The notes under the pieces were generated by a model. That model made no database searches and was not told the DNA's origin. It was given only the letters and a program-made list of their open reading frames with translations. This document shows positions 10,601-63,961 of a stretch of DNA of 64,000 nucleotides, piece after piece. Every line of letters starts with the position of its first letter. The stretch's first letter is position 1. The translations under genes and the position numbers were made by a program. The DNA is from Chara braunii (lineage: Eukaryota; Plantae; Charophyceae): assembly GCA_003427395.1 (NCBI GenBank), contig BFEA01000001.1:2595803-2659802 (forward strand), given 5' to 3'.

Positions 10601-11326
10601 TCAATTGGGATGAGATGTTGCCCAAGGTAGCCAGTGCGTACAACAATAGTGTGCATCTGTCCACCTGTCGCACTCCCAACGAGTTGCACGAGTCCTTTAG
10701 ACCGCGCAGACCGTTTGAGCGACTTAACCGGGATCAGATTCATAGGCTACTGCCCGGTACCAGGGAGTTCACGATACAGCACGAAAAAGAGCTAGCTACA
10801 GTCGTAGAGAACCTCAGGAAGGCCCAACATCGAATGATAGAGCAAGCCAACAAGCACCGTCGCCCATCGCAGTTCCAAGTAGGCGACTTAGTCTCGGTCA
10901 AGTCCAAAGAGTTTGCTCCTCGCAGAAGTTACTGCCAGCGTACAGGGGACCATGGCCAGTTCTAGAAGTCAAGGGCGGAGAGGATGGGTCGTCCTACACA
11001 GTAGAGATCCCAGCACACCTCCACACCTACCCGGTGTTCCATGCATCAAAGTTGTTGCCGTGTGTCACAAGTCAACAGTTTCCATCTAGAAGGTCCATGA
11101 TCCCTCCAGACATGGATGGAAGATACGACATTGACGGCATTGTAGGTGAAGACGTGTTCAGAACATGAGGTAGAGGTCGTCCATAGAAGCAATATAAGGT
11201 CCGATTTGCGTGTCAGGAACCGGAGGACGATCGCTGGTTTACCAGAACAGAACTGCTAGAAACTGCTCGCGACATAGTTAGGGCCTACGAGAGAGATAAG
11301 GGAAGTAAAGGTCCTGCCTTGGACTG
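7674..11326 (+). pseudogene. pol: Pol: aspartic protease, RT, RNase H, integrase, chromodomain
   Basis: LIDSGAT protease motif; RMCIDYRGLN, YLDD RT motifs; DASQYGIGAVL and NVVADALSR RNase H; SVDFMD, SDRD, ETNGQTEQMN integrase; YDIDGIV..YKVRF..EDDRW chromodomain at ~11120-11300. Several stops and frameshifts. Confidence 0.95.
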
Positions 11327-11365
11327 AGTTATTCTCGGAGGACCCCGAATTTAGGCCGGCAGGAG

Positions 11366-12265
11366 TGAAACACTATTCACCTGTTCGCAGTAGCCGATGC
11401 AGATCCCAGGGCTCGGTCCCTAGACTTATCTTACCTGTGTACAGTATCTGTGTCGACCCCGAGAGTTGAACCCGTGACCTGTGTATTTGTAACGTAGGTA
11501 GTGGGGGTTCGATCTGTAGACTTGTCGGGTAGGAGTCTTAGCAAGTTCTAGAAGTCGTAGCTGTAGCTCCTCCGAAAGGTCAAGGTCGTAGCTGCTACAG
11601 TATCGAAAGGCCAAGTCCACCACGGCCTTCCGGAAGGTCCTAGTAGTGGCCTTTCGAAGTTGCTCACGTTTAGGCTGAGGCAAGTGGGCAAGTGGTGGAG
11701 TCCACCCCTGCTGAGTCAGCAGTCCCAGTCCCAGTCAGTCCTAGTCCAGTCAAGCAAGTACCGTATGGGACTGTGTGCACCACGGGCATGGGAAAGGGGC
11801 AGACCAACGAGGTACAAAAGTATAAATCAAGAGGCAGCGCCCAGCCATTCATTCATTCCTGCGTAAGCCATTCGGGAGCGCAGCCACAGCGACTTGTGCG
11901 AGGTGGTCCGCAGTGGGCCCGAAGATGAAGTGGGCGAGAGAAGGAGCTTAGCCATAGCAATAGGGTAGCGGCGGCCATAGCCGCCATAGCTGCTAGGAGA
12001 GTGTAGCGTGTATGTGTGTGTGTGAGTGCACAGTGTACTGCGTGTGGGATATCCAAGGTGATCCTAAGATGAGTGCGTGTGAACAGGGGAGTTGAGTGAA
12101 GTGTCGAACAGAGAGTTGTGTGGGCGCTGAGGCGCCATAGCCATTTGAAGTGAACTCGAATCTGAACTGCGTTTTTGGCTACCATATCTCTGAGTTCTGA
12201 GTGGGCGGTTGTCGCCAGTTTGCTGCGCAACCTGTTTGCATGCATGTGAAGTGTGAATGAAAGCG
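11366..12265 (+). repeat. 3' LTR (visible part)
   Basis: Follows the PPT and matches 3418-4340. Confidence 0.93.
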
Positions 12266-12733
12266 ANNNNNNNNNNNNNNNNNNNNNNNNNNNNNNNNNN
12301 NNNNNNNNNNNNNNNNNNNNNNNNNNNNNNNNNNNNNNNNNNNNNNNNNNNNNNNNNNNNNNNNNNNNNNNNNNNNNNNNNNNNNNNNNNNNNNNNNNNN
12401 NNNNNNNNNNNNNNNNNNNNNNNNNNNNNNNNNNNNNNNNNNNNNNNNNNNNNNNNNNNNNNNNNNNNNNNNNNNNNNNNNNNNNNNNNNNNNNNNNNNN
12501 NNNNNNNNNNNNNNNNNNNNNNNNNNNNNNNNNNNNNNNNNNNNNNNNNNNNNNNNNNNNNNNNNNNNNNNNNNNNNNNNNNNNNNNNNNNNNNNNNNNN
12601 NNNNNNNNNNNNNNNNNNNNNNNNNNNNNNNNNNNNNNNNNNNNNNNNNNNNNNNNNNNNNNNNNNNNNNNNNNNNNNNNNNNNNNNNNNNNNNNNNNNN
12701 NNNNNNAGCATAACTGTGATGTGACCACCTATA

Positions 12734-18104: not shown

Positions 18105-18627
18105 GCCCCGGCTCCATTTCCATTCTGGGGAGCATCAGTCCGGTTTCTATTCCACCGGCAAGTCAGGTTAAAACATTACATCATGAAACCCACTAACGCT
18201 TCCTTCCGTCCGGCCGAAGGATCGCTGACCAGCATTGATTACTCCAACATCGTGGAGGATTGACTGTCAGCTTGCCTTACTTCCTCCTTCCCTCTCAGGT
18301 CAACTGCATGACCTGTCAAATAAATAATAAAAAGCAACCGTCCAGACGGATTAATCAATGCTGCTCAGGGGTCCTTCGGCCAGACGGAAGGAAGCGTGAG
18401 TCTGTCTTAATTGTTTTGTATAATTCCGACTTGCCGGTGGAATAGGAACCAGACTGACGCATTCAGCTGCGTGTCCAGCTCAACTGGCGTACTATTCTTT
18501 CGCCTTTTACTAAAGAATACCGTGGGCTGAGCACACTGAGCAGCTTATCACAATTTTTCACGGCCCTTCGCTCCGCCGAATAAAAAGAAAAGGAACCGGA
18601 CTGACGCTCCCCAGAATAGAAGGAGCC
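18105..18627. mobile_element. MITE/foldback-like long inverted repeat
   Basis: TCAGTCCGGTTTCTATTCCACCGGCAAGTC pairs with GACTTGCCGGTGGAATAGGAACCAGACTGA (~18428-18457). ACGCTTCCTTCCGTCCGGCCGAAGGA pairs with TCCTTCGGCCAGACGGAAGGAAGCGT. The outer arm is repeated at ~18591-18627. Confidence 0.75.
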
Positions 18628-31655: not shown

Positions 31656-34600
31656 CTCCCGCTGGCCTTATTTCGAGGTCCGCCGAGAAAAATCCCACTT
31701 TTACCTGTCGTAGCTGTTCAACCCACGTCCAGCCCTCTCATAGTAGGAAACAATGTGAGGGGCTGTTTGTATAAGTTCCTCCCTGGGGAGCGAGCGGTCC
31801 TCGCTGGGTTCCTGATAAGCGAACCTAACTTTATATTGTCTTTGAGGTCTCCCTCGACGACCGGTTTGGAATGTATCTTCAGCAACTATTCGATCTACAT
31901 CATACTTTCCATCCATATCCGGCGGTATCATGGAGCGTCGGGAGGGAAACTGGTCGTTTGTGATGCAGGGAAGTAACTTAGAGGCGTGGAATACCGGATA
32001 GGTATGCAGGTGGGTTGGAATCTCAATCGTGTAGTATGGACCATCTGCCTCTAACTTGACATCTAAGACTTGCCATCGTCCCCTATATGCGGGTAGCAGT
32101 TTCTGCGAAATCCGCTCCTCAGGAATGAACTCCTAGACTTAACCCATACCAGATCTCCTACCGCAAATTGCGATGGTCGTTGATGTTTGTTAGCTTGTTC
32201 TACCATCTGGTGTTGGGCCTTAAGGATGTTTTTCTTGACTTGCTCTAGATCTTTCTCGTACTGGATAGCAAACTCCCTCGTTCCGGGTGGCAATCTCTGA
32301 ATCTGATCTGGGTTCAGACAGTCGATTGGACGTCGAGGTCGCCAGCCCTTGTGCAGCTCGTCCGGTGTGCGTGCTGTCGACAAGTGTACGGAATTGTTAT
32401 ACGCAGCCTGTACTTTGGGAAGGTGCTCATCCCAGTCGATCTGATCGGGCCTAATATACATGCGAAGCACTTGCTGAAGCAGTTTATTCATCTGCTCAGT
32501 CTGACCATAGTTTCCAGATGTCCGCCGGAAGACATTGTCAATTTCGACCCATAGACTTTCATCAACTGTTGCCAATGCTCGCCCGTGAGCCTACTGTCTC
32601 GATCACTGACAATCGATAGCGGGTGCCCGTAATCCTTCACCCAATGATTGAAAAACTCTTTAATCACTAAATCGGTCTTTGCCTCGGCAGGCAGCGGAAT
32701 AGAAGCAGCGAACTTGCTAAACCTGTCTACAACTACCATCACTTGACTCTTACCATTTCTGCTTTTCACTTTCGTGTCCATGAAACGGACTAGCCAGGAC
32801 CGGACGGGATAAGTAGTGGCCTCAACAAGCCCAGTGGCGACTGTGTGGAGCTTTTGTTCCGCTGACACACTTGACAACCCTGGATGTAGGCAATGCAGTT
32901 GTGTTTCATACCGACCCAGGTGTAGGACCGTCGGAGGTTTGCATAAGTCTTCCTCCATCCGCAGTGGCCCTCAATGTCGTGGCGTTCTCCCAAGATCAGA
33001 CTTTTGGTAGTCTCATTGTTTGGGATGCACAGTCTGTCAAACCTATCAGTCTTTTTTCAAATAAGAGTCTGTCACTTACTCTATAGTCTGGAACTTCATG
33101 TGGTGTTGTTTGCACTCTCCTGATGAGTTCGCTGTAAACGGGATCCTCAGTGTACGCAGCTCTAATCTGTTGCTGCTGTTTGGTGTCGGCGTCTAAATAA
33201 GTCAAAATTGCACTGAAAAAGTTTGCGAGTCTACTAAGCGTATCTGCGATGACGTTGTACTTTCCCTTTACTGGCTTCAACTGGAAGTCAAACTGGTCGA
33301 TCTCCCCAGCCCATCTAGTCAACTTAGGAGTCATTCGGGCCTAGGTCTTTAACCAGCATAGAGTCCCACGGTCAGAATAGACTTTGAAATGTCTACCTAG
33401 CAGATAGTGCCGCCAGTGGCTCAGCGCTTCTCTCAAGCCAAGTAACTCACGTTCGTACGTTGACGCAGCGACCTTCTCACTAAGCAATCTACATGACATG
33501 AACTCTACTAGCCTATACCCTTCATCGTTCTGTTGGAGTACAGTGCCTATGCCATATTGGCTTGCGTCAGTAGTTACAATGAATGGCAAGTATGGATCTA
33601 CCTTTTTTAGGACTGGGTATTCGATCAACGCCTTTTCAACTTCTTGAAGGCAAAATTACAGTTTTTATCCCAATTCCAGACTGTTTCCATTCCTCAACAA
33701 CTTACGCAATGGTGCAGCGATCATCGTGAATATTCGCACAAACTTCCGGTAGTAATTCGCTAATCCTAAGAATGTACGCACTTCAGTCAACGTGTGCGGT
33801 GTGGGTCAATCTCTGATGGCTACTATCTTTGCGTCTTCCAGGCTGACCCGTCTTCGTCCAATACGTGGCCTAAGTACAAAACTTGACGCCTAGCCCATTC
33901 GCATTTCTTTGGGTTCACCTTGAACTTTACAGTGCACAACTTCTCTAAACCTAAGCGCAAATGTTGTTGATGCTCCTCTAGAGTCTTACCGAAAATCAAA
34001 ATATTGTCTAGATACGCTACTACAAATTTATCTAACCATTCGCGGAAGAGATCATTCATGCATCTCTGGAATGTAGCAGGGGCATTCGTCATGGCATGAC
34101 CACAAACTCGTAGTGGCCATAGCGAGTCCTAAGGTTGTCTTGTGCTGGTCTTCGGGTTGTACCTCTATCTAATGGTATCCCGATTTCAAGTCAATCTTCG
34201 AGAAGTATGTGCAGCCCTACACTCTATCCAACAAGTCGTCTATCCGCGGCAAAGGTTCAACATTCTTGACCGTAATCACATTCAAACTCCACTAATCTAT
34301 ACACATATACGCAGGTCACCTTCTTTCTTGGGCATAAACAAGACCGATGCGCAGTACGGTGAGGAGTTGGGCTTTATCCAGCCTTTCTCAGTCAGTTCAT
34401 TAAGTTGCTTGCGCAGCTCGTCGAGTTCTTTGGGAGACGTTCTGTAAACCGGTCCCTCGGGAATCTTGCTACCGGGCTCGATCTCTATCGAGTGCTTAAT
34501 CTCTCTTTCGACTACTCCCGCCAGACTTTCCCACATCTGCGAACTTTTCGAACAGTTTCTCAACTTTTGGCAGCGTTGGTATCTCCTCTTTTTTGCCTTC

Positions 34601-35390
34601 ACTTACCGGTCTAACGTATGCTACGAAGACTTGGTCAAGCAAATCGGGTTTGACCACGTGTCTGGCGAACGTGGGGGCACTCGTACAACAAAGGGACAAA
34701 CCGGACTCAACGCCAGACTCACGAAACAACCGCAATTTCTTTTTGCCTCCCTGAGGGCTGGGCAGCCAACATTCATGCTCGCCCATCTTCACATCTGCTC
34801 GCGTGGCTTCTCCCCAACCCGTCCCTAAAATCAGGTCAAAAGGTAGGTTATCCTTCACTAAGAGTGTCAGGGAGTTCAGAACTCTCTCTACCTTAGTCTC
34901 CCCCTCCAACCAAAAGTATGCCTTGATCCCTTTGACATAATCTTCAACTCTCATGTCACGATTGTCTGCGAGCCTACTCACTACCGGCTCATCCAACTCT
35001 TGAAGCTTCATGTCGAGGTGCATCTTCTTCAACCCCCTTCGCCTAGTGTAACTGCTCGTGGACCCACAATCGGCCTAGGCCGCGCATGGCCGCCTCCGGG
35101 GGGGGTTCATAGAACACGCCTACTCGCTCTGTGCTGATCTTTATGTCTGGTAATATAAGTTGCCCTTTGCTCTCCTTCTTTATTTCAGCCCAAGCTTGGC
35201 GACGAGTCATCAACTCATCACCTATGCCGGTGAGAGAACCACCCAGAGAGACCCTAGCACAAGCAGTCTCCGGACAGCTAACTGGGTGGAGGGCTACATC
35301 AAGCTTTGTCGTTGGGACCTTCAGACATGAGGGTGCCTGGTCAGCGCGCGCTTCTACTTGTCTGTCTATGTCTGAAGGCCCAATCCCTTT
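30690..35390 (-). mobile_element. 5'-truncated Ty3/gypsy chromovirus related to the 3418 element
   Basis: Minus-strand protease region (ETACARVSLG), RT (YLDN), RNase H (TDASQYGIG), integrase and chromodomain (YDVDRIV..YKVRFAY). PPT AAGGCCAGCGGGAG precedes an LTR starting TGAAAGG. gag and 5' LTR are missing. Confidence 0.92.
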
Positions 35391-44156: not shown

Positions 44157-45200
44157 CCACTTGGTCTTTTTGAAGGGGAAAAAAAAGTTCCTTGACTCAC
44201 ATTTGGTCCTTTGCACCTCGTAGAAATGTTTGATATGCTTGTCATTTTCTCAAAATTAACTTGAAGTGTTTAAATGTGTTGTCGAATTGCAAACAAAGTT
44301 ATGGTGAGTGCGGTAGTTTGTGGATGGAAGGTGAATTTCTAACATGCAATGACAATGACCTGAGTTTGAAATTACGGAAGAAAAGAAGGGCATGCTTGCT
44401 GGGTGGTAAACTTTAGGCATGGATACGGGCGGGCACGGGTGGATGGAAATTGGTCGTGGGTGCCGGCGGATGCGGGTGGATTAAATCTAGGCCTGGGTAT
44501 GGCTGGGTAGGGGTAAGGGTTTCACTGAAGATGCTGGGTGGGCTGGGTACGAGTAAAAAACAAATTTAATTAGCTTGGGTGGGCTGGGTCTGGGTAAAAA
44601 AATTTGTATTTACGTGGGTGGCAGTGGGTGAGGGTACATGTGATATATCCAGGCTTGGACTGGGTCGGATGTGGGTGGGAGAAAAAATTGGTTTGGCGAC
44701 CTCTGCCCCACGGATCTGGTGAGAGGAGTGTGGCAGTCCTAGTGGTCGAGGGTGGTCTTTCCCAGCGTGGTTTATCACACGGTCATCCTGAAGATGGACA
44801 TTCCGTTGAGGTATGCTGGGGCGCATCGAGGACAGGCCGGAGGACGATGACATGGCTGCCCACAAGGAGTCCACGGTCTTACGTTTGGCGTCGTGCTTCG
44901 AAGACGCGCTCCGCGACAGCCAATGGTCCGACAATGGGAAAATGTCCTAGTCGAGGTTGAACAGAATCGCGGATGCCCTCCGCCTCCTTCTTGCTATGCG
45001 CATGTGGATCATACGTATGAGTAGCGACGACGTCCGATCTCATGAGGAGGCGTCTTACTACTCGCAGCTCGTCGCGACGCCCACACTGTTGGCGGCAGGG
45101 TTTGCAGTCGTTCAACTGACACAGGCATATTGTGAGCTCCGGGAATGTTATTCTCTCTCGGCTTGGGAAGCCGCCCTTGACGTTGGGTGCGTTTCCTAAC
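42400..45200 (+). pseudogene. Decayed unknown ORF downstream of the trihelix ORF, split by a hAT insertion
   Basis: LWTDRETLWGTGPG...WIFRS...ESYVSVNYP|TDLVRGVW...EDRPEDDDMAAH reads in frame once 43066-44705 and one TSD are removed. Confidence 0.6.
43066..44705. mobile_element. Non-autonomous hAT element
   Basis: TIR CAGAGGTCGCCAA / TTGGCGACCTCTG, 8 bp TSD CCCCACGA / CCCCACGG, GGGT-rich subterminal repeats. TIR is related to the 37886 element. Confidence 0.88.
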
Positions 45201-45909
45201 TACATCCCGGAGTGGGCGGCATGCGGAGTGTGCTTCAACCACAATGGGTTTAACGGACCCTGACGTGGTGGCGAGGATGGACTGGAGGGTGACGGGACCT
45301 GTCGAAGACGAAAGGAAGGACGACAGAGACAATGAAGATGGAGGGTCGTGAGAGTGGCAGTCTTGCACCTTTTTCTCGCATTGTCTGCGTACGGAGCAGA
45401 AGCACCCGTGGTTGATGGCGTTGTCGGAGCAAACACCCTTACAAGGGTATTTGCTCATGATTTTGCATTCGATGCAGTATCGGCGCAGGTCACCGTGTCG
45501 GAGACAGGATGGAGTAAAAAGTGAGAATTTTTTTGGCATAGCGCCGTGAAGCAAACTTCTCGACCATTGAGGTCGAGATTTCTAGACAATCATACACAGT
45601 GATACGACGCATACGACAACAGGTAAGGGTTAGTAAAAATTAAAAGTCTCCGGCCACAAGAGCCGGAGGATTGGATGAGGACAAAAAAAGGTCGTGTGGG
45701 ATGCATCGACCACGAACTAAATCAGTCAAAGGTTCAGGCGGTAAGGGAAAAACAAATTAGATCGAGTCTAGAGACGTCGGACCAACCGGTACGGGAAAAT
45801 CTGGTCGTTGCGCCGCCGAAGCGGACTGAAATAATAATATAAGTCCCCGCCGCGCGGCCAGGGCAGCCAATAGAAATGTGCCACCACCACACCAAGCGGC
45901 GACGGCTGG

Positions 45910-46230
45910 TGTTGGCCCTCTAAAAATGTCAACTGTTGTCTTCCTTTCCGCGGCCTCGAGGGTCGGGCACATCTACCTCTACTTGGTGTGATACCGTTAT
46001 CCGCTATGTGAGTATTTTCCGCTGCTCTGAAGTGTCGCGGACCTCTTTCCCCGCCACTTGAATGTTTTCCGTGCCGCAACCCTCAATGTCACGGCCGCAG
46101 GCAAGTACCGGCCCTTTGGGCCAACAGATGAATCAAGTGCCCTTGCGGGTCACGCATACACTCGAGCCGACAAGCAATCAGACAGGCTTGCGAACCAGCA
46201 AGCGTGCACACACACTAACTTATGAAAAAC
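45910..46230 (+). repeat. Dispersed repeat, copy of 2200-2520
   Basis: See the 2200-2520 entry. Confidence 0.8.
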
Positions 46231-47880
46231 GGGCCCAGTCCACTGGTCGGGCTGAGCCCCGCTACTGTTTATGAACTAAGTTGCTCCCCTTTTACTCGAA
46301 GTGGGAGCTAGCTCAGTAGGTTTAGGTGCAGGACTGCCAAACACAGGGTGTAGGGATCGAGTTCACCCAACCACTAAAGCTAGCTCCTTTTTGTCAAGGA
46401 ACACCAATATGCTTTCACCTTGGGCTCAGGTGGTCGGGGCTCGAACCCGTGATCTCATTCTTCAGAGGCTGTTACAGTTTGGTCCGCTGTAACGAGGCGT
46501 GTACACTTGGCACGTACAGAAAGTTAGTAGTTAGATTNNNNNNNNNNNNNNNNNNNNNNNNNNNNNNNNNNNNNNNNNNNNNNNNNNNNNNNNNNNNNNN
46601 NNNNNNNNNNNNNNNNNNNNNNNNNNNNNNNNNNNNNNNNNNNNNNNNNNNNNNNNNNNNNNNNNNNNNNNNNNNNNNNNNNNNNNNNNNNNNNNNNNNN
46701 NNNNNNNNNNNNNNNNNNNNNNNNNNNNNNNNNNNNNNNNNNNNNNNNNNNNNNNNNNNNNNNNNNNNNNNNNNNNNNNNNNNNNNNNNNNNNNNNNNNN
46801 NNNNNNNNNNNNNNNNNNNNNNNNNNNNNNNNNNNNNNNNNNNNNNNNNNNNNNNNNNNNNNNNNNNNNNNNNNNNNNNNNNNNNNNNNNNNNNNNNNNN
46901 NNNNNNNNNNNNNNNNNNNNNNNNNNNNNNNNNNNNNNNNNNNNNNNNNNNNNNNNNNNNNNNNNNNNNNNNNNNNNNNNNNNNNNNNNNNNNNNNNNNN
47001 NNNNCAGCAGGGAACGTGAGGGGGATGTGCGCGCTGAGGTAGAGGTTGGATGAAAGAACGCGCGATGAGAGGAAGCGGGTGCAGGGAGGTAGCGATCGCA
47101 AACGAGGAGAAAAGGGGCACGGACGCTAAAGAGAGGGGTACGGGGGCAAGGAAAGGGAAAGGCACATGCCAGCGAGCAGAAGTGGGACGCGCGGGGAGAT
47201 GAAGATGAAGAAGGAGGAGAGGGAGAAAAGAGGAGGAGTGGAGGCGACTTACCTGTCGCCCATCCTCGGCTTCAGCACCCTCATCCCATAGAGGGTGGGT
47301 GCAACTTTGTTGGGATGTTGTTTTCGTGTCCACACTCACAAACGGAGCGTTCCGGCAGTATTCGGAGGTGTCGAGACTCGTGAGAAGGCTCTGCACTCGT
47401 TGTCGTCCAAGCAGCGTCGTAGAGCAACTCATCAGCCGACAGGTAAGTCTCCAGCCCCGCAACTATCATCACGCTACCTCTATCAATAGGAGGAGCAAAA
47501 TCGAATGAATCTCCGGCAACAATGTGGAAATATACGCCGCCGCTTGTGCTGTTGCTGTTGCGCCTTCGTCGCTGTTCGCCCGTTGTTGCGTCTTCGTCCC
47601 GCCTCATCCGCCGACTTGCCAGTTATGTACGTTTGTTTGTGTGTGTGTGTGTGTGGCGAGCGACCAATCTCACACTGCTTTCACTGATAGGATGAGCTAC
47701 ATCAAATAAAACTCTCACAAAAACACAAAAATCTATACTACTACTACTACGTTCGTGCGTGTGTGGGAAGTGCGCACGTGTGTGTATGAGTGAGAGAGAG
47801 AGAAAGGGAGAGTATGCGTGTGAGAGGGAGAAAGAGGGAGAGAAAGGGACAGAGAGCCGTCTACGTATGGGAGGAATATG

Positions 47881-50470: not shown

Positions 50471-51153
50471 TGTTATTGATTCAGTAGTTTGTGGTCTCAA
50501 CCAGCCTCATGCCGCCCTAAGAGAAGGCAGGCCTTAATGTCCGCCAAGGGCCCTTACCCCTGCATTTTTTTGATAGGGGTCGTGAACAGTAATGCAGGCT
50601 AGTTGGTTGAAGTCCGCCCCGGGCACACGCAGCATGAGGCCAGCATAGTAAGATGGGGGCCGCAAGCCACTAAGACGGTAGCATTGTCGCCGCATCCACG
50701 CACGGGCACTAAACGGCTTGGGCCGCGGCCAAACAGCATGACACCAGCAGACTATGGTCAGGCAGGGCATCAAACGCACATGGTTCTAGAAACACGCGTA
50801 CCGAACGGTGAGCGGGTTGCTATGCCCCGGGGTGTGTGGTAGGAACAAGGATAATGCATGAGGGAGAAAAAAAAATGTTAGAAAATGAGAAAAAGAAGGA
50901 GGAGGAAAGTGAAATAAGGAGGGGATCAATGGCAAAGAGGGCGAAAAGACTGTTTTTGTGGCTCCTGCATGTTTGTTTTTTTTTCAAAGAGATAAATTAT
51001 TTATTGTACTAAAAATATTCTCTTTACTATTGCTCCCTAAACTTTTATTTTTTCGGTTGATTGTCATTGTTATTGACTATCATTCATTAATTAGTATCAT
51101 GGAAAAGAAAGCGGATCAGATGGGGAGGGAAAGAGCAAGGTACCAGAGGGAGA

Positions 51154-53017
51154 CATCGTCACCGTGTGACGATGCCTACCTCCTCCATTCTCCTCTGTTC
51201 TCTCCTTGATTTAATCCCTTCTTTTCCTTTTTCTCCATATTTATCCAGTAATATTATTATAATCATCGTCATTGTTATCATATTGCTATTGAAGGTAATG
51301 AGAAAGATCAGATTTGAGAATTATGGGGCACTGGAGTGGAGAGAGACATCGTCACCGTGTGATGGTGCCTACCTCCTCCATCCTTCCCCATTCTCCCGTG
51401 ATCTAATCCCCTCACTTCCCTTTGTTTTCACAAACTATCCAAAATGGTATGATATCTTTGAATGAAAAATCTACTCTATGGAGAAGGATCAAACAGACGG
51501 AGACAACAGGGCGATTGCGGGAGCTCTGCCGGAACTAGGAGGAACTCTGGAGGCAGGGAACCATGAGGTATGCGTCACCTATTCCGTTCGCATATACCCA
51601 TACAAGTTACAACCTTCTACTGGATTGCCCGTATGGGTGTGTGATATATTGTTTGTGTCTTCTTCAGGACTAAAAGTGTATCGAAATGAAAAAAGGTATA
51701 CGATTGAAGCAAGAATCCTGTCTGATGAAAGGAAGGAACCTAGGAGAACCGAGAAGGAACCTAGTTTGCTTGGGTTTGGGAAACAAAGTTGTGTGATGGA
51801 GGTTCCCGTGGGGTCGTCACACTGTTTGCATGGGCTGACTAAGATGGATGACGGGGTACTTGCCGTGCAAAATTACCCTGCCATTCATCTGACTAAAGTG
51901 ACAATTGATGAAATGTCTGTTTGATTTCAGCATTAGTGACGAGAAGCTGCCGTGCAGTTTTCTTGTTACCTTACAGGCTAGATCTAGAAAGTAATTCGGT
52001 ACTCCCGTGGGGTACATGTCTTCAAACGACTAACAAAAGCAAAGGTAGTGGGAGGCTCCCGTGGGGTTCTCCTATCACAGATCTGACCAAACTTGGAAAG
52101 GAACTAGGTACTCACCGTGCGAGTACACGAACCCCTAAGTCTGGGTCGATCTGCCCGACTTCCCGTGGGAGTCAACATACCTTTTGCTCATTTACGATGC
52201 ATAGGCAAATAGATGAACGGTCAGGGCAACTTAACTAAGAGTTGTTTTGACTGATTTCCTACGCATCAAACTGATAGTAGGGTAACTCCCGGGAGGGTTA
52301 CCCTAATACTTGTTTGATCTGGGGATCGACTAAAAGGAGCAAGGAAATGAGGTGATTGTGTTTGGGCAGTAGACGAATACTCCCGGGTGAGTAACCCTAC
52401 TACTTGTTTGAGTATAATTGATGGATGGCATGATTGATTACTAACGGCCTATCTATTTAACATTGAAGCAGGAAACAGGAGACTTCCGTGGGGTCATCCT
52501 TTTGCTTGTTTGACTCTATCTTAACAGGTATAATAAGATACTCCAGCAAAGGGAGGATCTGGTGTTTGCCTGAGTCCACTAACATAATCCTAGCTCGTCT
52601 GACTCTGAGAAAGCAGTAGGGTGACTCCCGTAGGGTCATCTTATTACACTTTTGAGGATAGACTGAGCTCTGGTTAAAGAGTAATAGAAGGTTTCCGTGA
52701 AGATCACCTATTACTAACTAGAATTATGTATTGACACCTGAATCTGAAGTGTTTTTCTTAATGTTGGGTCAAGTGTGGAGATGGTTCGACCATGACCTCC
52801 TAACTATCTGCTTAACTAATAAAAGGATGCTCTCATATGAGTTATCCGGTCGCCTGCATAAGACTGTTTGAGACAATTGATTGGATAAAGACTGCATGGA
52901 CTTTGAAGAGTGGTTGAGTGTTCCCGTGGGGCTACTAAACTACTCCTTTGACTAACAATTTTTGCCTGGAATTGATCAAGTAGTGGAAGATTCCCGGGTG
53001 AGTCGACCCACTGCTTG
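51154..53017 (+). ncRNA. Array of 16 stem-loops with a conserved CCG(T/G)(G/A) apical loop (putative cis-acting RNA)
   Basis: Loop motifs at 51162, 51355, 51806, 51863, 51950, 52005, 52059, 52115, 52163, 52289, 52383, 52486, 52628, 52695, 52924 and 52994. Each is centred in an inverted repeat with a different stem sequence and many G-T pairs on the + strand. Confidence 0.75.
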
Positions 53018-56000
53018 TGTATGTCAGGACAAGAAGAACAGAAAGGAAAAGTGGACTGCTTCAGCGCGAGCGACTCTAAAAGTCATAGAAAAAACAGAAT
53101 AAGAGGCAAATACCGCGGAGACAAAGAATTAGAAAAGAAGAAGCTCCGCGTAGCCTCAGTACATTAATAAACTCCTAAGGGAGAAAACGTCAAATGGCAT
53201 GAATTGATCTTAGCTAGACTGCCGCGTAAGCACCAAACGGAGTGCTTATCCGCAGGAAAAAGAAATACAGAGACTGAGAGTAGGGGAAATGTGAGTTTCC
53301 CTAAGATAACTTAGGACATAGGCAAGAGACTCCTTGAACAAAAGGAGAAGGGGTGACAGACGACTGAGGGTAGGTAGAAACTAGGGGTTATACTTTGGGA
53401 TGTTAATCCCAAAGCTCACAGACCAGATCTAAGGGCTTGACCCTTAGATATCAATATGTCGAAAATCGAGTGGGGGTGTTGAATCTTTGTTGACCTGTGT
53501 GTGTGCAGGTCCCTGTTTTGATCTACAGCAATTGAAGGAGAAGTCATATAAAGAGGACTCAATTTTTTTGTTACCTCTCGATAACAGGTCGGTCGTTGTC
53601 GATTCAACTTTTCCCCTTTGACTTGATACCCACGTCTAAAATCAAACCCTGTAGTCAGTAAAACTGTCACCTGTGGTCATTGCCTAAATGGTCCTGGTCA
53701 CTCTCAAGGGTCCTTTGAAGAAATGTGAGGGGGTTGGGCTTACGTCTCAGGAAAGATAGAGTTGTCATACATGGTTTGGGGAGTGAGGGACAATGTCAAT
53801 GGTTGATGGTTGATGTCGTCAGTGCATGGCATGTGAACTGTTTTTGCATCATTTTGTGCAGGTCTGTCTTGTGCATGATTTGGATTGAACTGGGATTGAC
53901 ATCGTGAAGAGTCTTGGACACACATCACTTGTGAAAGTGAGAAGGGTTCCCAACGGTAATACCTCTGTATTCATTTTTAGTCTTATATAACTTTTATACC
54001 ATATGATGTTCAGTCATATGTTAAGTAGAATAAAATGCCCTTGGTAGTGACAAGGTTTGTTTGATACTTTGATCATAGTGGTCAGAAGGAGATGTTTTGG
54101 GAGCAGAAGCGAAAATGGACGACCATCTCAAAGTTTGACCTGAATATCTAACGGCCATGAAGGATGAGAGGAGCTTTCTGCTTGGCACCGCCAGTCTTCT
54201 GCTGTTCAAAGAAGATAAGGGCATTGCGCGCAATCTGCAAAGGTAAAACATGGCCGGTATAACGGTGTGCTGATCACCACCCGCATGCTGAACAGAGAAA
54301 GGAGACATGTGAAGAGGATATGTTCTCACGAGAGTGCATGACGCGCGTGAAGTAAGGAGAGACGGTTCGCATGAGAAAGTTTACGCGCGAGTTAGCTGCT
54401 GACGTCAGCATTTTGTCGCAACATGAATCTTGATTCAACTTCAACATGACACCCGTCAGCTCCTTGCTTCTTGAAATTCGAGAAGTTGAGAGGGAACGTG
54501 CAGGCTGCTTATCATTATGAGTGGGGCCATGCTAAGTTTTTGTTATGGAGGATGATAGTGATGAGTATTGTTTGTTTGGTTAGTGAGCCCAGCGGTCAGG
54601 GCCTAACATCTGATAGACTTAAGATGTGAGTTCAAGCTTTACAAGCGAAGACCAGTCATCCTCGACAGGAGTAGTGGTTGCGAGACCGATAGGACTAAGC
54701 TGACAGCTAAGTATACTTGGGTACCGAAAGATCATGCCGCTTAAGGGAGTGGTTGATAGCGACCAAAATTAAAAGAACCTTAATAAGACTCTAGATATTG
54801 CGTTCCCACGTAATCCTGACAAGGCCGCTTGGTAGGGTGAGTGGGTAGTGTCTTGGAAGGGTCAAGTAGCTTTGCACAGCAAGAGGGGTAGTTTTACTGT
54901 TNGCTCTGAGCTCTTCTGAAGTTTTCGCTCTTAATAAAGGTATTTTCTTCCTTTTCTTGATCGGTCATTCGACGCTGCCGAAGGACTCTTGTGCTANTCT
55001 CACAGACACTCGGACTGAATTGAGCGTGATGGTCTAGTTTTGACTAATGAACAAGAGAAAACTGGTGCTGAGAAAAGTCGCTTACCTGCTGGCTAAATAT
55101 TTNCTTGACGGGGATTAGTGATCTGCACTTTAATTTTAGCTGGCTCAAGTGTATAATGGGTAACGGGTAAGCCATCGGGAANCAGAGTGCATTTGTGGGT
55201 TGAGAAAAGTACACACAGTTCATGTTATGCGGTACTCAGAGGAACGCTCAACTAGGTTCTGGTATGCCAGCTCACCTGTGAGTTGGATTGCGGAATCTAA
55301 TTACTCANAAGATAAAATCCCATGAGATGCTATGATGTGTTGTGACATTTTAGGNAGAGCCGGGTCTTAATTGTTAAATTTTCTTGTCTTTTAAGGGGGC
55401 NAGAGCAGNGGGNTCAATGTCTTGAGGAGTGAGCTTGGTGAGTAANTATGNNTTTTTGTTGTGTTTCCCTGAGCCATGGTACTCGAGGACAGACTGAGTG
55501 GGGCCTACAATTTCCTTGAAATCCTTTTGAGTGAGTTATCAGGGATGGTTTCGTAACTAGTTCGGCACTAGGCGAGACTCAGACCTGAGCTTCACTTGTA
55601 TCAATAACAAAAGTATTGTGTGATACATGAGTGGAGATCGTAGTTGCACTATTCGGGTGATGAGGGCTTTTGTTGACGTTGCCCCGCGCTCTGTGCATAA
55701 TGAACCGTGTGGTGTAGAGTCTGTCGCAAGAGTGTCCATCTTTAACAAAAGCCAGACCAGGAGGTGAGCATGCTCTGATTGAATTCGTAATCAACCTTTG
55801 GGGGTGAGATTTGTCTTTGTAGTCGAGCGTGAGGGACAGGGTGGTCCTCCGTCAATAGCACCCCAAGTTTTGTTATCTGAAGGGTCAGGACCATCCGTGA
55901 TGGGTCTCTATCCCGAAGTTGAGGAGTTAAATTGAGAACTGTTCGCAGGGGAAACTCTTGTAGCCTTGCGTCTATTTCAGGAAAACTTTGACTCATGCGA

Positions 56001-56116
56001 AACAGACTCAGGCAATCTGCAAATGGACCCAGACAACCCAGTGTGGGCTCCGGTAATTCAGTATAAGTACAGACAAACCCTGTGTGTAACTCTGTGATAC
56101 CGATCGTGAAGAAGTC

Positions 56117-56362
56117 ATGAAGAAGGACGAAATTCTAATGGTGAAAGGTAGATCGGATAGGGATAAGAGAGAAGGCTGGGAGGAAGAGGCGAGTAGGGAT
56201 ATGGAAGGACATAGACTAACTAAAAGAGAGTTTGCGGTTGAAACAGTAGGAGAGAGAAGGTACATCGAATTTGTGATCTACTTTGACGGGCCCGATGGTA
56301 AACTGCATAGTACTGGTTTTTCGCTAGAGAGCGTGGAGCAGGCCAAGGCAAAACTTGCGTGA
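56117..56362 (+). CDS. Small unknown protein (81 aa), paralog of 57865-58116
   Basis: Ungapped alignment from the start Met gives 18/81 identities to the 83 aa ORF. Confidence 0.6.
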   Translation: MKKDEILMVKGRSDRDKREGWEEEASRDMEGHRLTKREFAVETVGERRYIEFVIYFDGPDGKLHSTGFSLESVEQAKAKLA

Positions 56363-56634
56363 GCCCAACAGAGTTGAGATCATTGTTTCCATAATTTTTA
56401 CTAGTGTCCAAATAGTGGCAGTCTGCAGCCTCCTCCGTGGCATGAGGATGCTGGTGTCAACAATCCAAATACTCGGTACATATTTAGACAGTCAGAGCTG
56501 GGACTAGGCTAGGATCAGCGTTCAGACATCGGGGTTGACACAGTAACCAGAGTGGTAACCGGAAACGGCTGTCAGAGAACAGGTTTTCTAGGCAGCAATT
56601 GGGGACCGTGTCTAGAACAAGTATTCGAAAGGCA

Positions 56635-56745
56635 TCCGGAACCATACTCAGAACCGTATCCGGAACCATACTCAGAACCGTATCCGGAACCATACTCAGA
56701 ATCATATCCGGAACCATACTCCGAACCATACTCGGATTCTTACTC
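56635..56745. repeat. 12/24 bp tandem repeat
   Basis: CCGGAACCATACTCAGAACCGTAT about 4 times. A decayed 12 bp period recurs at ~57380-57500. Confidence 0.85.
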
Positions 56746-57864
56746 AGCCACTATTCGGTCCTTTACTTGATTGATGTTTCGCAACCAGTCAGTGGTCAGA
56801 GAAGGCACTTCTGAATGAAAATTTTTGCGGCAATAGTCAGTCGTTAACCAAGTGGTGGTCAGACAGTGACAGGACCAGCAACCAGAACGGCAAGCAGATT
56901 AGGGGTCAAAGCCTCATCCAAAAACTACAACTAAAAGAAAAAAAAGAGGGAGAAAGGGGGCGAGGGTAGCCCTCAAGGCAGTATTTTGAAGAAATAGCAT
57001 TCAAAGCCGACTCCTAGAACGTTTCTAGTGCAGCGCCCGGGACTGTACTCGAAACCGTGTTCAGATTGGGACAGTTCTTAACAAATAGTTCAATCACTAT
57101 TTTAATCCATAGTTGTTTAACAGACGGTCAACTTGACCTGACAGCGGACGTTCATTGGCAGACTACGGTTATCTCGACCTCTAGCAACTTGCCCTTTATC
57201 AGCAAACATCAACAACACTCAGTCTACACCGTCAACAGTCAAACGACAGCGTTCAGTTTTCAGTCAGCGACTAATCAACATCTAACCAGCCAAAAGAGAA
57301 GGTGTTTAGATCAGGACTCATATTATTTTGAACGGTATTCAGGTCCGGATTTGGGCTCTGTACTTTGGACTTAACTGTGCTCGGAACTGTACTTGGGCAG
57401 TACTCGTAACTGTACTCGGAGCTGTACTCAGAGCGGTTCTTAGGAAAGTACTTGGAGCCACATTTAGAGCGGTACTTAGGATGGTGCTCTGAACGGTATT
57501 TAACTGTGGATTCGGTTACCTCTCAATTTGCATTTAATCAGCAAACAGCCAACTCAAACGGCAACGAGTGTTCTTTATCAAGCAATAAGTTTTCAGAGCA
57601 GCAATCAGCCAGTAATTGGAAACAACCCTCCAGAGCAGTAATTGCAGTAGTAGCAGTCAACTGGTAATCAAACGGTGAGCGAATGACAACAGAGAACTGT
57701 ATCTAGAACAACAACCACTGCCAACCAGGAACAGCAGCAGGAAACGACAATCTGAAACAACCATTCAAAACAGCAATCTGCCCAATAATCTTTTCACACT
57801 TGTATCATCCAAGAGTCACTCGTATCGAGTTGGTGATCTGATGTAACGAGAATTCAGTGAGAAT

Positions 57865-58116
57865 ATGGACAACAATAGCACAGTCAGAGTCTCCTGCTTG
57901 CTGTATCAGAGTGCTCAAGAGACCTGGAGGGAGAAAGCAGTTGAGGAGTACAATCAGCAGACCGCTATGATGATGGAACGCGCGCTGGTTCTCGTGAGGG
58001 ATCATACAGAAATCGAATACACATACTACCTGCATGATAAGATTGGCAGACTATGTGTCACCATAACTTCAGTGGGCACTATTGAGGAAGCAAGGAGGAT
58101 CGTGGGCAACCACTAG
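57865..58116 (+). CDS. Small unknown protein (83 aa), paralog of 56117-56362
   Basis: Shares ExWxExA, ExAxxxV, IE[FY]xxY and G[KR]LxxTxxS[LV]x[ST][VI]ExA with the 81 aa ORF. Confidence 0.6.
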   Translation: MDNNSTVRVSCLLYQSAQETWREKAVEEYNQQTAMMMERALVLVRDHTEIEYTYYLHDKIGRLCVTITSVGTIEEARRIVGNH

Positions 58117-58315
58117 TGAGTGTTTTGTCTCTGAACGAGTACAGCTCACTTATCCGGACAACCAACAATCATCTAATCAGCAGTCAATTAGCAGCAATCA
58201 GTTATTATTAGTGATCAGTTTCTAGCAATCAGTCTTCAGCAATCATTTTCCTGCAGTCGGTTTGGTAATCTGTTCCCCGGGACCGTCTGATCAGCTTGTA
58301 CTGGCAAGAGTACTC

Positions 58316-58978
58316 ATGAGCACAGTTCAGTCTATGCCGGTAAGTGAGTCAGTGCTGGCCAACCTCAATTGGATCTCATGCAAAGAGGCATTTCATTATC
58401 AGTATGTTAGTGTCATTGGTTTCAGACAGGGAGATCTGTCAAACTTCGTTGTCCAGACCAGTTTTGCTGATGGCACTATCCACGATTTGAGGCCTTATCT
58501 GAAGAAGGGCAAGGAGGCTCATGAACTTTTCGATCCGGTCTGGATCTCAGCCACCAATTGTCTTGAGCAGAGAGAGGGGGAGCTCGATGAGAGTGGTACT
58601 ACATTGATCCGCAGCTTCGGGCCGGCGCTTTATACTGACTATCCTAGGCCTCCGGTCCCTTCTCTTATCACTGATGGCACGAGTTGGTTGGATGTGATCG
58701 GTTTGGCAAAGAGGTACATCTCTCCGACGGTGATCGACATTGAGGCGTTGACTGTGCCCACTAGGTATCCCTACCTTAGACGAGGGGTCTTTTCAGTAGA
58801 CGGGTTGCCTACATTGTGGGAGGAGTTTTGCTCTATGGTTAATTACCATGTTATGTGCCTCGGATGGTCGTGTTCAGAGTTTGCTGGCTACAAGTGGCAT
58901 TTTATCACGAAGCCCCAGTCTCAGACTGTACGTGGGCACCAGAAAAGATCAGTGAAAAGAGAGATTGTGAGAGGCTGA
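58316..58978 (+). CDS. Orphan 220 aa protein
   Basis: Uninterrupted, compositionally complex ORF from ATG 58316, with AATAAA at ~59252 downstream. No recognised domain. Confidence 0.45.
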   Translation: MSTVQSMPVSESVLANLNWISCKEAFHYQYVSVIGFRQGDLSNFVVQTSFADGTIHDLRPYLKKGKEAHELFDPVWISATNCLEQREGELDESGTTLIRSFGPALYTDYPRPPVPSLITDGTSWLDVIGLAKRYISPTVIDIEALTVPTRYPYLRRGVFSVDGLPTLWEEFCSMVNYHVMCLGWSCSEFAGYKWHFITKPQSQTVRGHQKRSVKREIVRG

Positions 58979-59464
58979 CCAGAGGGATGAGTGAGGACTC
59001 TTGAGAGGTGCTGACCATGCCCGTTTACATGTACTTTCTGAGATTATTATGAGTTCTCATTCTTCCCTCATTCAATTGCCCCTATCTTTGCTCAAGTCAG
59101 TCAGTCTTATTTTCTGCATTATTCTTGCTTGATGATTGCCTTCGTGGATGCTTTGTCACAGTTCTCAAAATCAGATTGACAATTGATGCATGCATAGCAC
59201 CCCATAACTTTATGATCATTATTTGCATAACTCTCTACTGTTCCGAATCAAAATAAAAGATTCCTAAGACCGGGGACCGGCGAAGACCGCAATTGAAGGG
59301 TCTCGCTCAAAGCCGAACGCACACAACAGGAAGGGACTTGCATTATTTAATTCATTTTATTTATTGCAATCACATACAAAATCCTGCGTGACAGCCTGTT
59401 GGCTTTCCGATCGCCCGAAGTGGCCCGACTGGAAAAAGTGCGACAACGCGCGTATGTGTGCGCG

Positions 59465-60157: not shown

Positions 60158-60329
60158 GTATGTGTGTATGTGTGCATATGTGTGGTCGTGTATGTGTGTG
60201 TGTGTGTGTGCGTATGTGTGTATACGTATGTGTGTGTGCGCTCGCGTGTTTGTGTGTAAATGTGTTTGTTTGTGTGTGAGTGTGTGTGTGCCTGCACACA
60301 CATTTTTTTTCCCGAATACATTCCTCAAG

Positions 60330-60792
60330 AATCAACAAAAGAGTTTGGAATCGATCGTGCCAAAAATGCGAACGTGAAGGCAAAGCGAAAGTCAGTTCCA
60401 AGAAAAAATCTCTGCAAGATATTCGTATTTTGCATAAATCTACCAACCTTCAGATTTCAAAGACTGTCTTTTATCGGGCCGTTGAAGAAATTACCAAGGA
60501 CAGGAAGAACGACGCCCGAGTGCATCTCCTTCCTCTCCAAGCTCTTCAAGCTCTTCAAGAGATTTCAGAGCAATGGATAAGTCAATTATTCCGAGACACG
60601 GTTTTGGTAGCATCTTGTACCAGACGTGTGTCAGTCCTTCCTAAGGATCTCCACACCGTCATTATGATACGGAACGATGAATTCAGTGAGGGGTGGAAGG
60701 AGAAAGTTAGGGATTGCATACCACCAGCACCTTTGACAAGTTATGAGAAGACTTGGGTACAGCGGATGAAACCAAGGCGGACAAAGAAATGA
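60330..60792 (+). CDS. Highly divergent histone H3-like protein (histone fold plus C-terminal extension); start unresolved, possibly a pseudogene
   Basis: SLQDIRILHKSTNLQISKTVFYRAVEEI...ALQEISEQWISQLFRDT...RVSVLPKDL...IR aligns with H3 [28 protein letters not shown]...ALQEAAEAYLVGLFEDT...RVTIMPKDI...IR. No in-frame ATG upstream of the fold. Confidence 0.8.
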
Positions 60793-63296
60793 AATGTAGA
60801 CGAAGTTTGACTGTGAAGAGTTGTACGTGTAACATACGCCAAGAGGGGGAATGTTAAGGTTTTTTTTTTTTGACTTTTTTTTTTCTAGGCACTTTGTTGC
60901 TACGGCGGAGGCTTAGACGTGCTCCTCAGCACAACAGAACAAAGATTCGATGACCAATGAACTCAATGATGATGAATATTATTCCATGGTTTGAGGAGAA
61001 TGAACTTTCAGGGTTGTAGTGTTTACAACAAAACACAGAATTGTGCATGTGCTTTATATTCCTTGGTTCCGTTTTTTACTATGGAAATGGCGGTTTTTTT
61101 TCTGGTTATCGTCATGGCATCGCGGTTGGTTGTTTCCTGTTGTTCGGCATCTGGTGCAGGGGCGGTGCTCATATGTAGGAAATGACATCCGCGTTTGTCT
61201 TTTACGTTGTTCCTGGTGGGGTTCAAAGCCGATCGTGTTTTGATCTGCATCCCGGATGGTTTTGTCTTGTTGTTCGGTCTATTTTGGCGTGGCATCATAG
61301 CGCTGCTCTCATGTGGGACTAATCATCCAGGTTCTGGTTTTGTCTTGGGATGTATTGTTGTCGGACATGTTGAAATTTCTGAATAAGGCATTTGAGTTCA
61401 CGGACGTCCGCAGCCATATCAGCATTGGAAACTTTTATATATAGTCGTGTTGTGAAAAAAAAAAAAAAAAAAAAGGATATCCTGGTTGCTTTTGTCCCGT
61501 CGTTTTCCCTTTGGCGCGGCGGCAACTATTTGTGTTTGTGTTATTGCTTGTTGCCCCCTGTTCAGTTATATTTCGCTATTCCCTTCCTCTTTTCTTCGCC
61601 TTTTTGCCTTTCGGGCCTTCGACTGTGTACAAGTGGATCGATATGACACACGGGGGTGGGGGCAGCCGACGCTCAATCTACATCCACGTGGGCGGCCTTG
61701 CATGCAAGAGGTTCTGAACAGGGGGAGTTTTTCTAAACTGGAAATAAAATATGAATTTAATTTATTTTTTTTTCGTTTTTGCGCTTTGATAAATGTGTGA
61801 CNNNNNNNNNNNNNNNNNNNNNNNNNNNNNNNNNNNNNNNNNNNNNNNNNNNNNNNNNNNNNNNNNNNNNNNNNNNNNNNNNNNNNNNNNNNNNNNNNNN
61901 NNNNNNNNNNNNNNNNNNNNNNNNNNNNNNNNNNNNNNNNNNNNNNNNNNNNNNNNNNNNNNNNNNNNNNNNNNNNNNNNNNNNNNNNNNNNNNNNNNNN
62001 NNNNNNNNNNNNNNNNNNNNNNNNNNNNNNNNNNNNNNNNNNNNNNNNNNNNNNNNNNNNNNNNNNNNNNNNNNNNNNNNNNNNNNNNNNNNNNNNNNNN
62101 NNNNNNNNNNNNNNNNNNNNNNNNNNNNNNNNNNNNNNNNNNNNNNNNNNNNNNNNNNNNNNNNNNNNNNNNNNNNNNNNNNNNNNNNNNNNNNNNNNNN
62201 NNNNNNNNNNNNNNNNNNNNNNNNNNNNNNNNNNNNNNNNNNNNNNNNNNNNNNNNNNNNNNNNNNNNNNNNNNNNNNNNNNNNNNNNNNNNNNNNNNNN
62301 NNNNNNNNNNNNNNNNNNNNNNNNNNNNNNNNNNNNNNNNNNNNNNNNNNNNNNNNNNNNNNNNNNNNNNNNNNNNNNNNNNNNNNNNNNNNNNNNNNNN
62401 NNNNNNNNNNNNNNNNNNNNNNNNNNNNNNNNNNNNNNNNNNNNNNNNNNNNNNNNNNNNNNNNNNNNNNNNNNNNNNNNNNNNNNNNNNNNNNNNNNNN
62501 NNNNNNNNNNNNNNNNNNNNNNNNNNNNNNNNNNNNNNNNNNNNNNNNNNNNNNNNNNNNNNNNNNNNNNNNNNNNNNNNNNNNNNNNNNNNNNNNNNNN
62601 NNNNNNNNNNNNNNNNNNNNNNNNNNNNNNNNNNNNNNNNNNNNNNNNNNNNNNNNNNNNNNNNNNNNNNNNNNNNNNNNNNNNNNNNNNNNNNNNNNNN
62701 NNNNNNNNNNNNNNNNNNNNNNNNNNNNNNNNNNNNNNNNNNNNNNNNNNNNNNNNNNNNNNNNNNNNNNNNNNNNNNNNNNNNNNNNNNNNNNNNAAAA
62801 GAATTAAAATGAGTGATTGTGCCAACACCTTTTCGACACTGCCATTTTTGCCGATTTTTAATTATTTTTTGCCATTGACAAATGCCCTGAAAATTTACAG
62901 ATATGTAGTTTACATAATCAATAACTCATTAACAAATTTTAAAAAAATAATAAAAATTGTTAGGTCCCGAAATAAAGTGAAAACAAAAGCTAAAAATGAA
63001 AAAAAACAAAATAGTGAGTAGGCGAGCATGTTTTGACACCCCCATCTTTGACGATTTTTAATGTTTTTTTGGCTCAGCAGGATGACTTCAAATTTGTAGG
63101 CGCGTAGGTTACATCATAGAGGACTCACAAAAAACAATTCAGAAAAAAAAACTAATTTCTAGGCCCCGAAATTGTTTTTGGCGGGGGCCGAACCTAAGGT
63201 ATTCGGCCCCCGAACGCTCGAACGTTCGGGGGCCAGCCCGGGGCCCCCCAAACATTCGGTCAGGTAACCCTGTATATATATATATATATATATATA

Positions 63297-63443
63297 GGCG
63301 GTTATGCTCTGTGTCATACTGCATCATGATGCTGGAAGGAAGACAAACCACCTTAACGAAATGTCGTTGCCCGACATAACGCCTGCATATACAGTCACAC
63401 AGAAGACACACACACACAAAAAAAAAGAAGAAAAAAAAAAAAG

Positions 63444-63484
<41 letters not shown>

Positions 63485-63600
63485 TTTGTCTCTTTGTCGT
63501 AAAGGTGGTTATGCTCCGTGTCCTACTGCATCCTAATCCAGGAAGGGAACCGAACCACCTTTACGACATGGCGTTGCTCGAGTGACATAGACACACGCAC

Positions 63601-63647
<47 letters not shown>

Positions 63648-63769
63648 TACACAGAGAGAGAGAGGATTTGTGTCTTTGGCGTAAAGGTGGTTATGCTTAG
63701 TGTCCTACTGCATAAGGATGCAGGAAGGGAGTCAAACCACCTTTACGACATACCGTTGCTCGAGTGACA

Positions 63770-63808
<39 letters not shown>

Positions 63809-63961
63809 ATATAAAGAGAGAGACAAAGGATTTATGTCTTTGTCGTAAAGGTGGTTATGCTCTGTGTCCGAATGCATCAAGATGCAGGAAGGGAGCCAAA
63901 CCACCTTTACGACACACCGTAGCTTGACTGACACAAACACAGACATACGTACACACAGAGC

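Follow-up and report, generated by a model that had tools for sequence, protein, structure and literature searches.

Large non-chromovirus LTR elements often contain tandem arrays (PMC6317226; PMC11963269), and in the OTA group (Athila, Tat, Ogre, Retand) the upper size of the LTR is about 5 kb (PMC6317226). The retrotransposon lineage of Chara braunii analysed here resembles both OTA and the moss lineage Phygy in the PR-RT-RH-INT order of its domains and in a primer site for a tRNA other than tRNA-Met; it also shares extra ORFs, very long LTRs and tandem arrays with OTA, and the 4-bp NCGN target with Phygy (PMC6317226). Its LTRs, however, exceed those of OTA, with 6–7 kb in a full-length relative (locus L016) and most likely at least 8.3 kb in the window, the whole stretch of 64,000 nucleotides analysed here. 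Phygy elements are short and coding over nearly the whole interior, whereas the Chara lineage has giant LTRs and several extra ORFs, which are sense-oriented and located inside the LTR and the leader. Conserved accessory ORFs of a possibly regulatory nature stand beside repeat arrays in the Gypsy element Retand as well, but there they are antisense and lie between pol and the 3′ LTR (PMC11963269).

Two types of hairpin systems can be compared with the array described below. Several palindromes near the LTR promoter are found in Sireviruses (PMC4728375). These are, however, Copia elements, while the relative at L016 has the Gypsy domain order; furthermore, their palindromes are few and poorly conserved, whereas the 11 to 16 units of the Chara arrays keep one loop on covarying stems and are located, unlike the palindromes, downstream of the putative TATA box. 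The second type comprises HIV-1 TAR/Tat and RRE/Rev and the pseudo-triloops of BMV, HBV epsilon and the IRE, with which the array has in common a loop predicted to be closed by C1-G5 (PMC3884659). With TAR and RRE it also shares a probable location in the 5′ part of the LTR transcript and the presence of small accessory ORFs on the same element, and one unit (CCGGGA) is a single base away from the TAR loop. These RNAs have no homology to the array, and the comparison with Rfam proposed in an earlier note on this DNA, performed with gathering and E-value thresholds, gave no relevant family. The array has 16 copies against one in the TAR-type systems, is made mostly of plain triloops and has no TAR bulge. 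The IRE loop CAGUGN is absent, all 16 loops starting with CCG, and the unpaired C that the IRE has five pairs below the loop is absent in 16 of 16 units.

The findings bear on the self-recognition of RNA by plant LTR retrotransposons and on the function of their many extra ORFs: a structurally constrained RNA array occurs together with possible partner proteins that are under purifying selection, and a sister family has a different loop, so that specificity can be tested by loop and protein swaps. Our data indicate that this is a real, selected array of RNA type in what is most likely a giant gene-carrying Gypsy LTR, previously unassigned; no earlier description of the array or of the LTR was found in the literature searched. 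LTRs above 8 kb with genes of their own would widen the known range of LTR architectures.

The hairpin array, its pairing and its sister arrays

The window is repeat-rich algal DNA of Chara braunii, and a Gypsy pol within it shows 87% identity to gene models of this species; the genomic relatives compared are all from the Chara braunii assembly. Sixteen hairpins with a constant CCG(U/G)(G/A) loop were found on the + strand at 51154–53017, each at the place given in the earlier note, together with the outlying CCGTG hairpin that it had reported (55889–55906, +; loop at 55895). The loops of units 1 to 8 start at 51162, 51355, 51806, 51863, 51950, 52005, 52059 and 52115, and those of units 9 to 16 at 52163, 52289, 52383, 52486, 52628, 52695, 52924 and 52994. 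The loop is CCGTG in 12 units, CCGTA in one and CCGGG plus one base in the other three. Units 1 and 2 (51146–51423, +; both CCGTG) are a 193-nt duplicate, 83% alike, upstream of a conserved promoter block, while the main array of units 3 to 16 (51783–53017, +) begins about 190 nt past a TATA-like box. Twelve of the 15 gaps between units measure 48–142 nt, close to the usual spacing of 50–140 nt noted before, and the remaining three are 193, 451 and 229 nt long. The stems have 10–20 bp with internal loops. The C1-G5 pseudo-triloop that had been suggested for the loops may hold for a part of them: six-base loops, in which this geometry, with a 1–5 pair across the loop and the sixth base bulged, is possible, occur in 3–4 of the 16 units, and the rest are predicted as C-G closed C[CGU]G triloops. 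By loop type, the prediction for the CCGUG and CCGUA loops (13 units) is mostly a CGU triloop closed by C-G, and for the three loops of CCGGG plus one base it is the pseudo-triloop form. The Roquin CDE and Smaug SRE loops, whose readers are animal or fungal, fit part of the units only and were rejected.

On the + strand of 51101–53060, 14 of the 19 CCG[TG][GA] words close an ungapped stem of at least 4 pairs. Such stems numbered 0.15 on average and 2 at most in 1000 dinucleotide shuffles of the same segment, in agreement with the expectation that CCG(T/G)G would be centred on hairpins more often than in shuffled sequence. No CCG[TG][GA] word closes a stem of at least 4 pairs on the − strand of this segment, and in the remainder of the window the stem-closing words are 5 of 153 (+) and 2 of 147 (−). 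As a control chosen post hoc, the best loop-start 3-mer of any kind was taken; it reached at most 9 in 200 shuffles, against the 14 observed. CCGTG words are absent from the − strand of 53100–59400, and a further 341 kb or so of Chara DNA contained no other CCGUG array. Many units have upper-stem and flanking words in common. TRF detected no tandem array in 51154–53017 and the mean column identity is 52%, which, in a eukaryotic context, supports the view already expressed that the array is neither a CRISPR nor a simple tandem repeat; judged from its sequence, it is a degenerate repeat derived from a single ancestral unit. The loop, which contains a CpG, is kept in 16 of 16 units though the region is CpG-depleted (o/e 0.51 outside the loops).

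Pairing was analysed on a loop-anchored alignment; from a MAFFT alignment of the complete units RNAalifold obtained no structure, owing to misaligned hairpin arms. The stems covary, as the earlier note had proposed: of 75 cells, 70 are paired between the two arms of the same unit, whereas an exchange of arms among the units leaves 51.6 ± 3.2 (maximum 65 in 20000), and double-sided changes occur in 21 cells, a value as high being reached in 0 of 500 shuffles and slid controls being far lower; since the units share descent, these counts and those of the hairpins are not fully independent observations. The five pairs beneath the loop comprise 57 Watson-Crick, 19 G-T and 2 A-C pairs. The ratio of G-U over A-C (19:2) favours a single-stranded structure of the + strand, and folding of both strands of the array region against 12 shuffles gave z = −5.7 on the + and −3.7 on the − strand, so that the proposed + strand structure gains support from G-T bias, folding and covariation. 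The statement that stem imperfections are largely G-T on the + strand is valid near the loop only; over loosely extended stems no G-T excess over base composition was seen, by a strand-symmetric measure that over-extended the stems. The sense direction of the element is that of the + strand as well, as given by ORFs with a dN/dS of about 0.2 and, in the relative, by the LTR end followed by the primer site. The kept CpG loop and the changing stems appear as the pattern that is left by selection on a single-stranded structure.

The promoter block upstream of the main array (51499–51657, +) is homologous to L016 82705–82860 (70%, E 3e-13) and to L011 22953–23154. It contains the putative TATA box CATATA (51591–51596, +), which is degenerate and readable on either strand and aligns with the canonical CTATAAA of L016 (82793–82799), which reads on the + strand. 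Hairpin arrays lie about 250 nt past the promoter block in L016 and L011 as well, with a constant loop that differs from that of the window. L016 83056–83964 contains 11 hairpins with a UAAGUU loop (one UAAGAU), the apical pairs of which vary (CCA/TGG, CTA/TAG, CTG/CAG) and which fold better on the + strand in 11 of 11 units. Five hairpins with a UAAGAU loop (one UAACAU) and double-sided changes precede the end of the locus in L011. Homology picks up again after the arrays, where a non-coding stretch of the window (53525–53949, +) is conserved with L016 84792–85232 (nhmmer E 7e-5). As far as can be read from this comparison, which covers the promoter block, the array and the following stretch of the sister family, the position and architecture of the array are conserved and the loop is family-specific.

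The probable LTR that carries the array

The element was classified by means of L016 79966–28880 (−), a full-length Ty3/Gypsy element with giant LTRs and several ORFs inside the LTR. Protease, RT, RNase H and integrase follow each other in this order at 70034–65434. The 5′ LTR (79966–73958, 6.0 kb) starts with TGTCG and ends with CGACA; the 3′ LTR extends from about 62040 (TGTCG) to 28880 (CGACA) and is broken by nested insertions. CCGG is present on both outer flanks, a 4-bp NCGN target duplication, and the 18-nt primer site at 73953, directly after the 5′ LTR, is presumably that of tRNA-Asp. Four to five tandem paralogues of ORF C (see below) lie between the primer site and gag, a second member of the lineage is nested at 44326–47305, and the RT is about 25% identical to the chromovirus RT of the window. 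This full-length family carries many young tandem palindromic repeats that fold without preference for the sense strand. An RNA array is therefore not found throughout the lineage.

In the window, a conserved 16-nt motif, a terminal stem-loop and a final GCGACA (59381–59445, +) form the 3′ end of the probable LTR. The same end was found in L001, in L002 (twice) and in both LTRs of L016, which shares the 16-nt motif and the final GCGACA with the window; the alignment of the two LTR ends is short (score 40, against a maximum of 35 in shuffles). The copies that reach the shared end finish with GCGACA (GTGACA in L001), and beyond it their flanks are unrelated, beginning with ACGC, ACAT, ACGC and CCGC; the window LTR is followed by ACGC, an NCGN target. 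The flanks of five insertions are ACGC, ACGC, CCGC, CCGG and ACAT, the last being possibly an NCGN target altered by CpG decay. No primer site follows the LTR end at 59445, which would make the copy a 3′ or solo LTR; it has no pol of its own and is probably inactive. TGTCGC (50685) and TGTTAG (50876) are candidates for the left boundary (50685–51145, +), neither with a matching target duplication, and a piece of an unrelated chromovirus-type LTR (50493–50618) adjoins them.

The LTR end, the ORF C paralogues and the ORF D motif shared with L016 lead us to interpret 51146–59445, with a left end that may lie further upstream, as most likely the LTR of a related family, of + sense and with a length of no less than 8.3 kb; the continuity from the array to the LTR end rests on the window locus and on piecewise homology. 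The earlier note had spoken of an unclassified element. It is, instead, most likely a giant LTR that belongs to a non-chromovirus Ty3/Gypsy retrotransposon of Chara braunii. A 5′-truncated LINE or Penelope-like element, a Helitron, DIRS, Dada and a minus-strand LTR with antisense ORFs had been considered and were displaced by the structure of L016. Nothing related to the element was found in five of seven randomly chosen Chara loci.

Several ORFs are distributed along the LTR. A putative Arg/Lys-rich ORF of 48 codons, for which no homologue was found, begins directly 3′ of the last hairpin (53021–53167, +). Acceptor-like sites are present at 53508 and 53861; the two strands could not be told apart by a generic scan for splice sites. 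ORF D (55044–55118, +) is the remnant of a conserved coding motif of 25 codons, 68% identical to L001 and 48% to L016 74998–74924, inside the LTR of the full-length element. ORF A (56117–56362, +; 81 aa) is by alignment a paralogue of ORF B and shows a third-position excess in the copies L001 and L002. Tandem repeats of 12/24 nt, also found in L001, separate ORF A from ORF B (56634–57481, +, with blocks at 56634–56747 and 57373–57481). ORF B (57865–58116, +; 83 aa) has a predicted alpha/beta domain (pLDDT 75) and a dN/dS of 0.23 against L001, and ORF C (58316–58978, +; 220 aa) has a dN/dS of 0.18–0.28 in four copies. The N-terminal 130-aa domain of ORF C is common to the 4–5 L016 paralogues (22–27% identity, E down to 1e-13). 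The selection tests used the copies in L001, L002 (two) and L007, in the + frame. By these substitution patterns, the ORFs encode three small proteins under purifying selection. They are followed by an AATAAA (59252–59257, +), kept in L001 and L002, which may serve as polyadenylation signal.

A Pfam search of all 88 open stretches of 50480–59400 and of ORFs A to C gave no credible domain, and none such as TRP28; broken ORFs were searched as separate stop-to-stop pieces. A PDB sequence search and a fold search with ORF C gave no match. A word-based search for ORF C found none among proteins of 131–416 aa and returned the query only among those of 417–1328 aa, other lengths being outside its scope. 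ORFs B and C matched no known RNA-binding fold in the libraries searched, a blank that is not proof of a new fold. Weak fold matches of ORF B to PD-(D/E)XK-like proteins and Rai1/DXO (E 0.01 or worse) were not accepted. The viral contigs contained no relatives of ORF C, and four isolated exact pattern matches there were taken as chance. Relatives of ORF C were seen on two short metagenome contigs (L008 and L014, ENA sample ERZ27272674), with up to 62% identity to an L016 paralogue and with the next ORF behind them. These relatives make it probable that the lineage is present in a further organism, which may be a charophyte.

Proposed role of the array

We propose, with a probability of about 0.55, that the array would act as a multivalent platform for protein binding, located where the LTR transcript begins; a protein encoded by the element would read it and so mark the RNA of the family as its own. 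Transcription would start near 51620 on the + strand, so that the initial 1.4 kb of the LTR transcript would be made up of units 3 to 16; for units 1 and 2, upstream of the TATA box, an upstream start or read-through into a 3′ LTR would be needed. In each hairpin a stem of about 5 bp, seated on an internal loop, would expose a triloop closed by C-G, and the many copies would provide a multivalent landing pad for the protein. Proteins can be bound in the same way by a triloop or by a pseudo-triloop (PMC3884659), in keeping with the occurrence of both five- and six-base loops in the array. As each family keeps one loop and the families differ in it, the reader would most likely be encoded by the element, the candidates being the small LTR and leader proteins A, B, C and D, or Gag. 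This protein may decide the fate of the RNA, through elongation or read-through past the polyadenylation signal of the LTR, nuclear export of unspliced RNA, or packaging. The logic would be that of TAR/Tat or RRE/Rev in a retrotransposon of the plant lineage. If the LTR forms its own transcription unit, with a polyadenylation signal near its end (59252), a switch between accessory mRNA and genomic RNA would be needed, a task that the platform could perform. A sponge would be the least likely job for the array because the loop is family-specific.

Only tentatively do we extend this to a family-specific loop code, in which each family would have 10–16 hairpins, an LTR gene cassette of 6–9 kb and its own LTR-encoded reader of undescribed fold, with Tat/Rev-like feedback or self-recognition and coevolution of loop and protein. 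If binding is confirmed, each loop with its protein would provide a new orthogonal RNA-protein tag comparable to MS2/PP7.

Less probable is that the same RNA array is read by a host protein, or works without protein, either by giving rise to small RNAs from the hairpins or as a silencing shield. Such a role has been proposed for the LTR palindromes of Sireviruses, which form hairpins, diverge between families and are siRNA hotspots (PMC4728375), and the blank for RNA-binding folds in ORFs B and C points the same way. Small RNA production, however, needs long stems and not a fixed loop, whereas the stems have here 10–20 bp and the loop is conserved; a host reader, for its part, leaves the differing loops of the sister families unexplained.

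It is rather unlikely that the units work at the DNA level, as promoter-proximal binding sites of a transcription factor or an anti-silencing factor, with palindromic flanks that would be a by-product or would form single-stranded DNA hairpins during reverse transcription. VANDAL transposons encode DNA-binding anti-silencing proteins with family-specific motifs, the arrays adjoin the TATA-like block, their core words are constant, and the sister loop holds CCAAT on the − strand in L011. However, recognition of double-stranded DNA selects neither compensatory pairing nor G-T over A-C on one strand, as seen in the window (19:2) and in the 11 of 11 units of L016, and most L016 units have lost the CCAAT word and kept the hairpin. 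Finally, the array as a neutral relic, the decayed product of an old tandem amplification of one palindromic unit, would agree with the shared ancestry of the units, with the frequency of tandem arrays in large non-chromovirus LTR elements (PMC6317226, PMC11963269) and with the plain tandem palindromes of the full-length L016 family, but it is already disfavoured, as spacers and stems have diverged past TRF detection while the CpG loop is kept in every unit and the stems show double-sided changes.

Other features of the window and of the related loci

Further CCGTG words with weak stems occur on the + strand inside the LTR, at 56435, 56606 and 57055. Inside the promoter block of L011, at 22979, there is a lone 9-bp hairpin with an ACGTG loop, near the loop motif of the window. 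A segment resembling U6 snRNA by eye lies 2.2–2.6 kb upstream of the promoter block in L011 (20700–20790, below the Rfam threshold) and L016 (80140–80210). Fragment arrays resembling U2 snRNA by eye, with GA microsatellites, surround the two LTR-end copies of L002 (5900–6830 and 11000–11740). The metagenome record L007 (BFBZ01006156.1) contains Chara-type repeat DNA and has, at 420–1151, an ORF that resembles Ulp1 protease by eye beside a truncated copy of the element.

Elsewhere in the window, a common Chara Gypsy element occupies 3418–12266 (+), with LTRs of about 920 nt that are 93% identical, and an older fragment of a related family lies at 31749–35286 (−). A U5 snRNA gene (18465–18578, +; 78.7 bits) is located immediately 3′ of a 330-nt imperfect inverted repeat (18132–18460). 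Just beyond the LTR, a degenerate core-histone-like ORF was found at 60280–60792 (+; Pfam Histone, E 1.5e-12), and a 164-nt tandem repeat with AC microsatellite spacers at 63293–63957.
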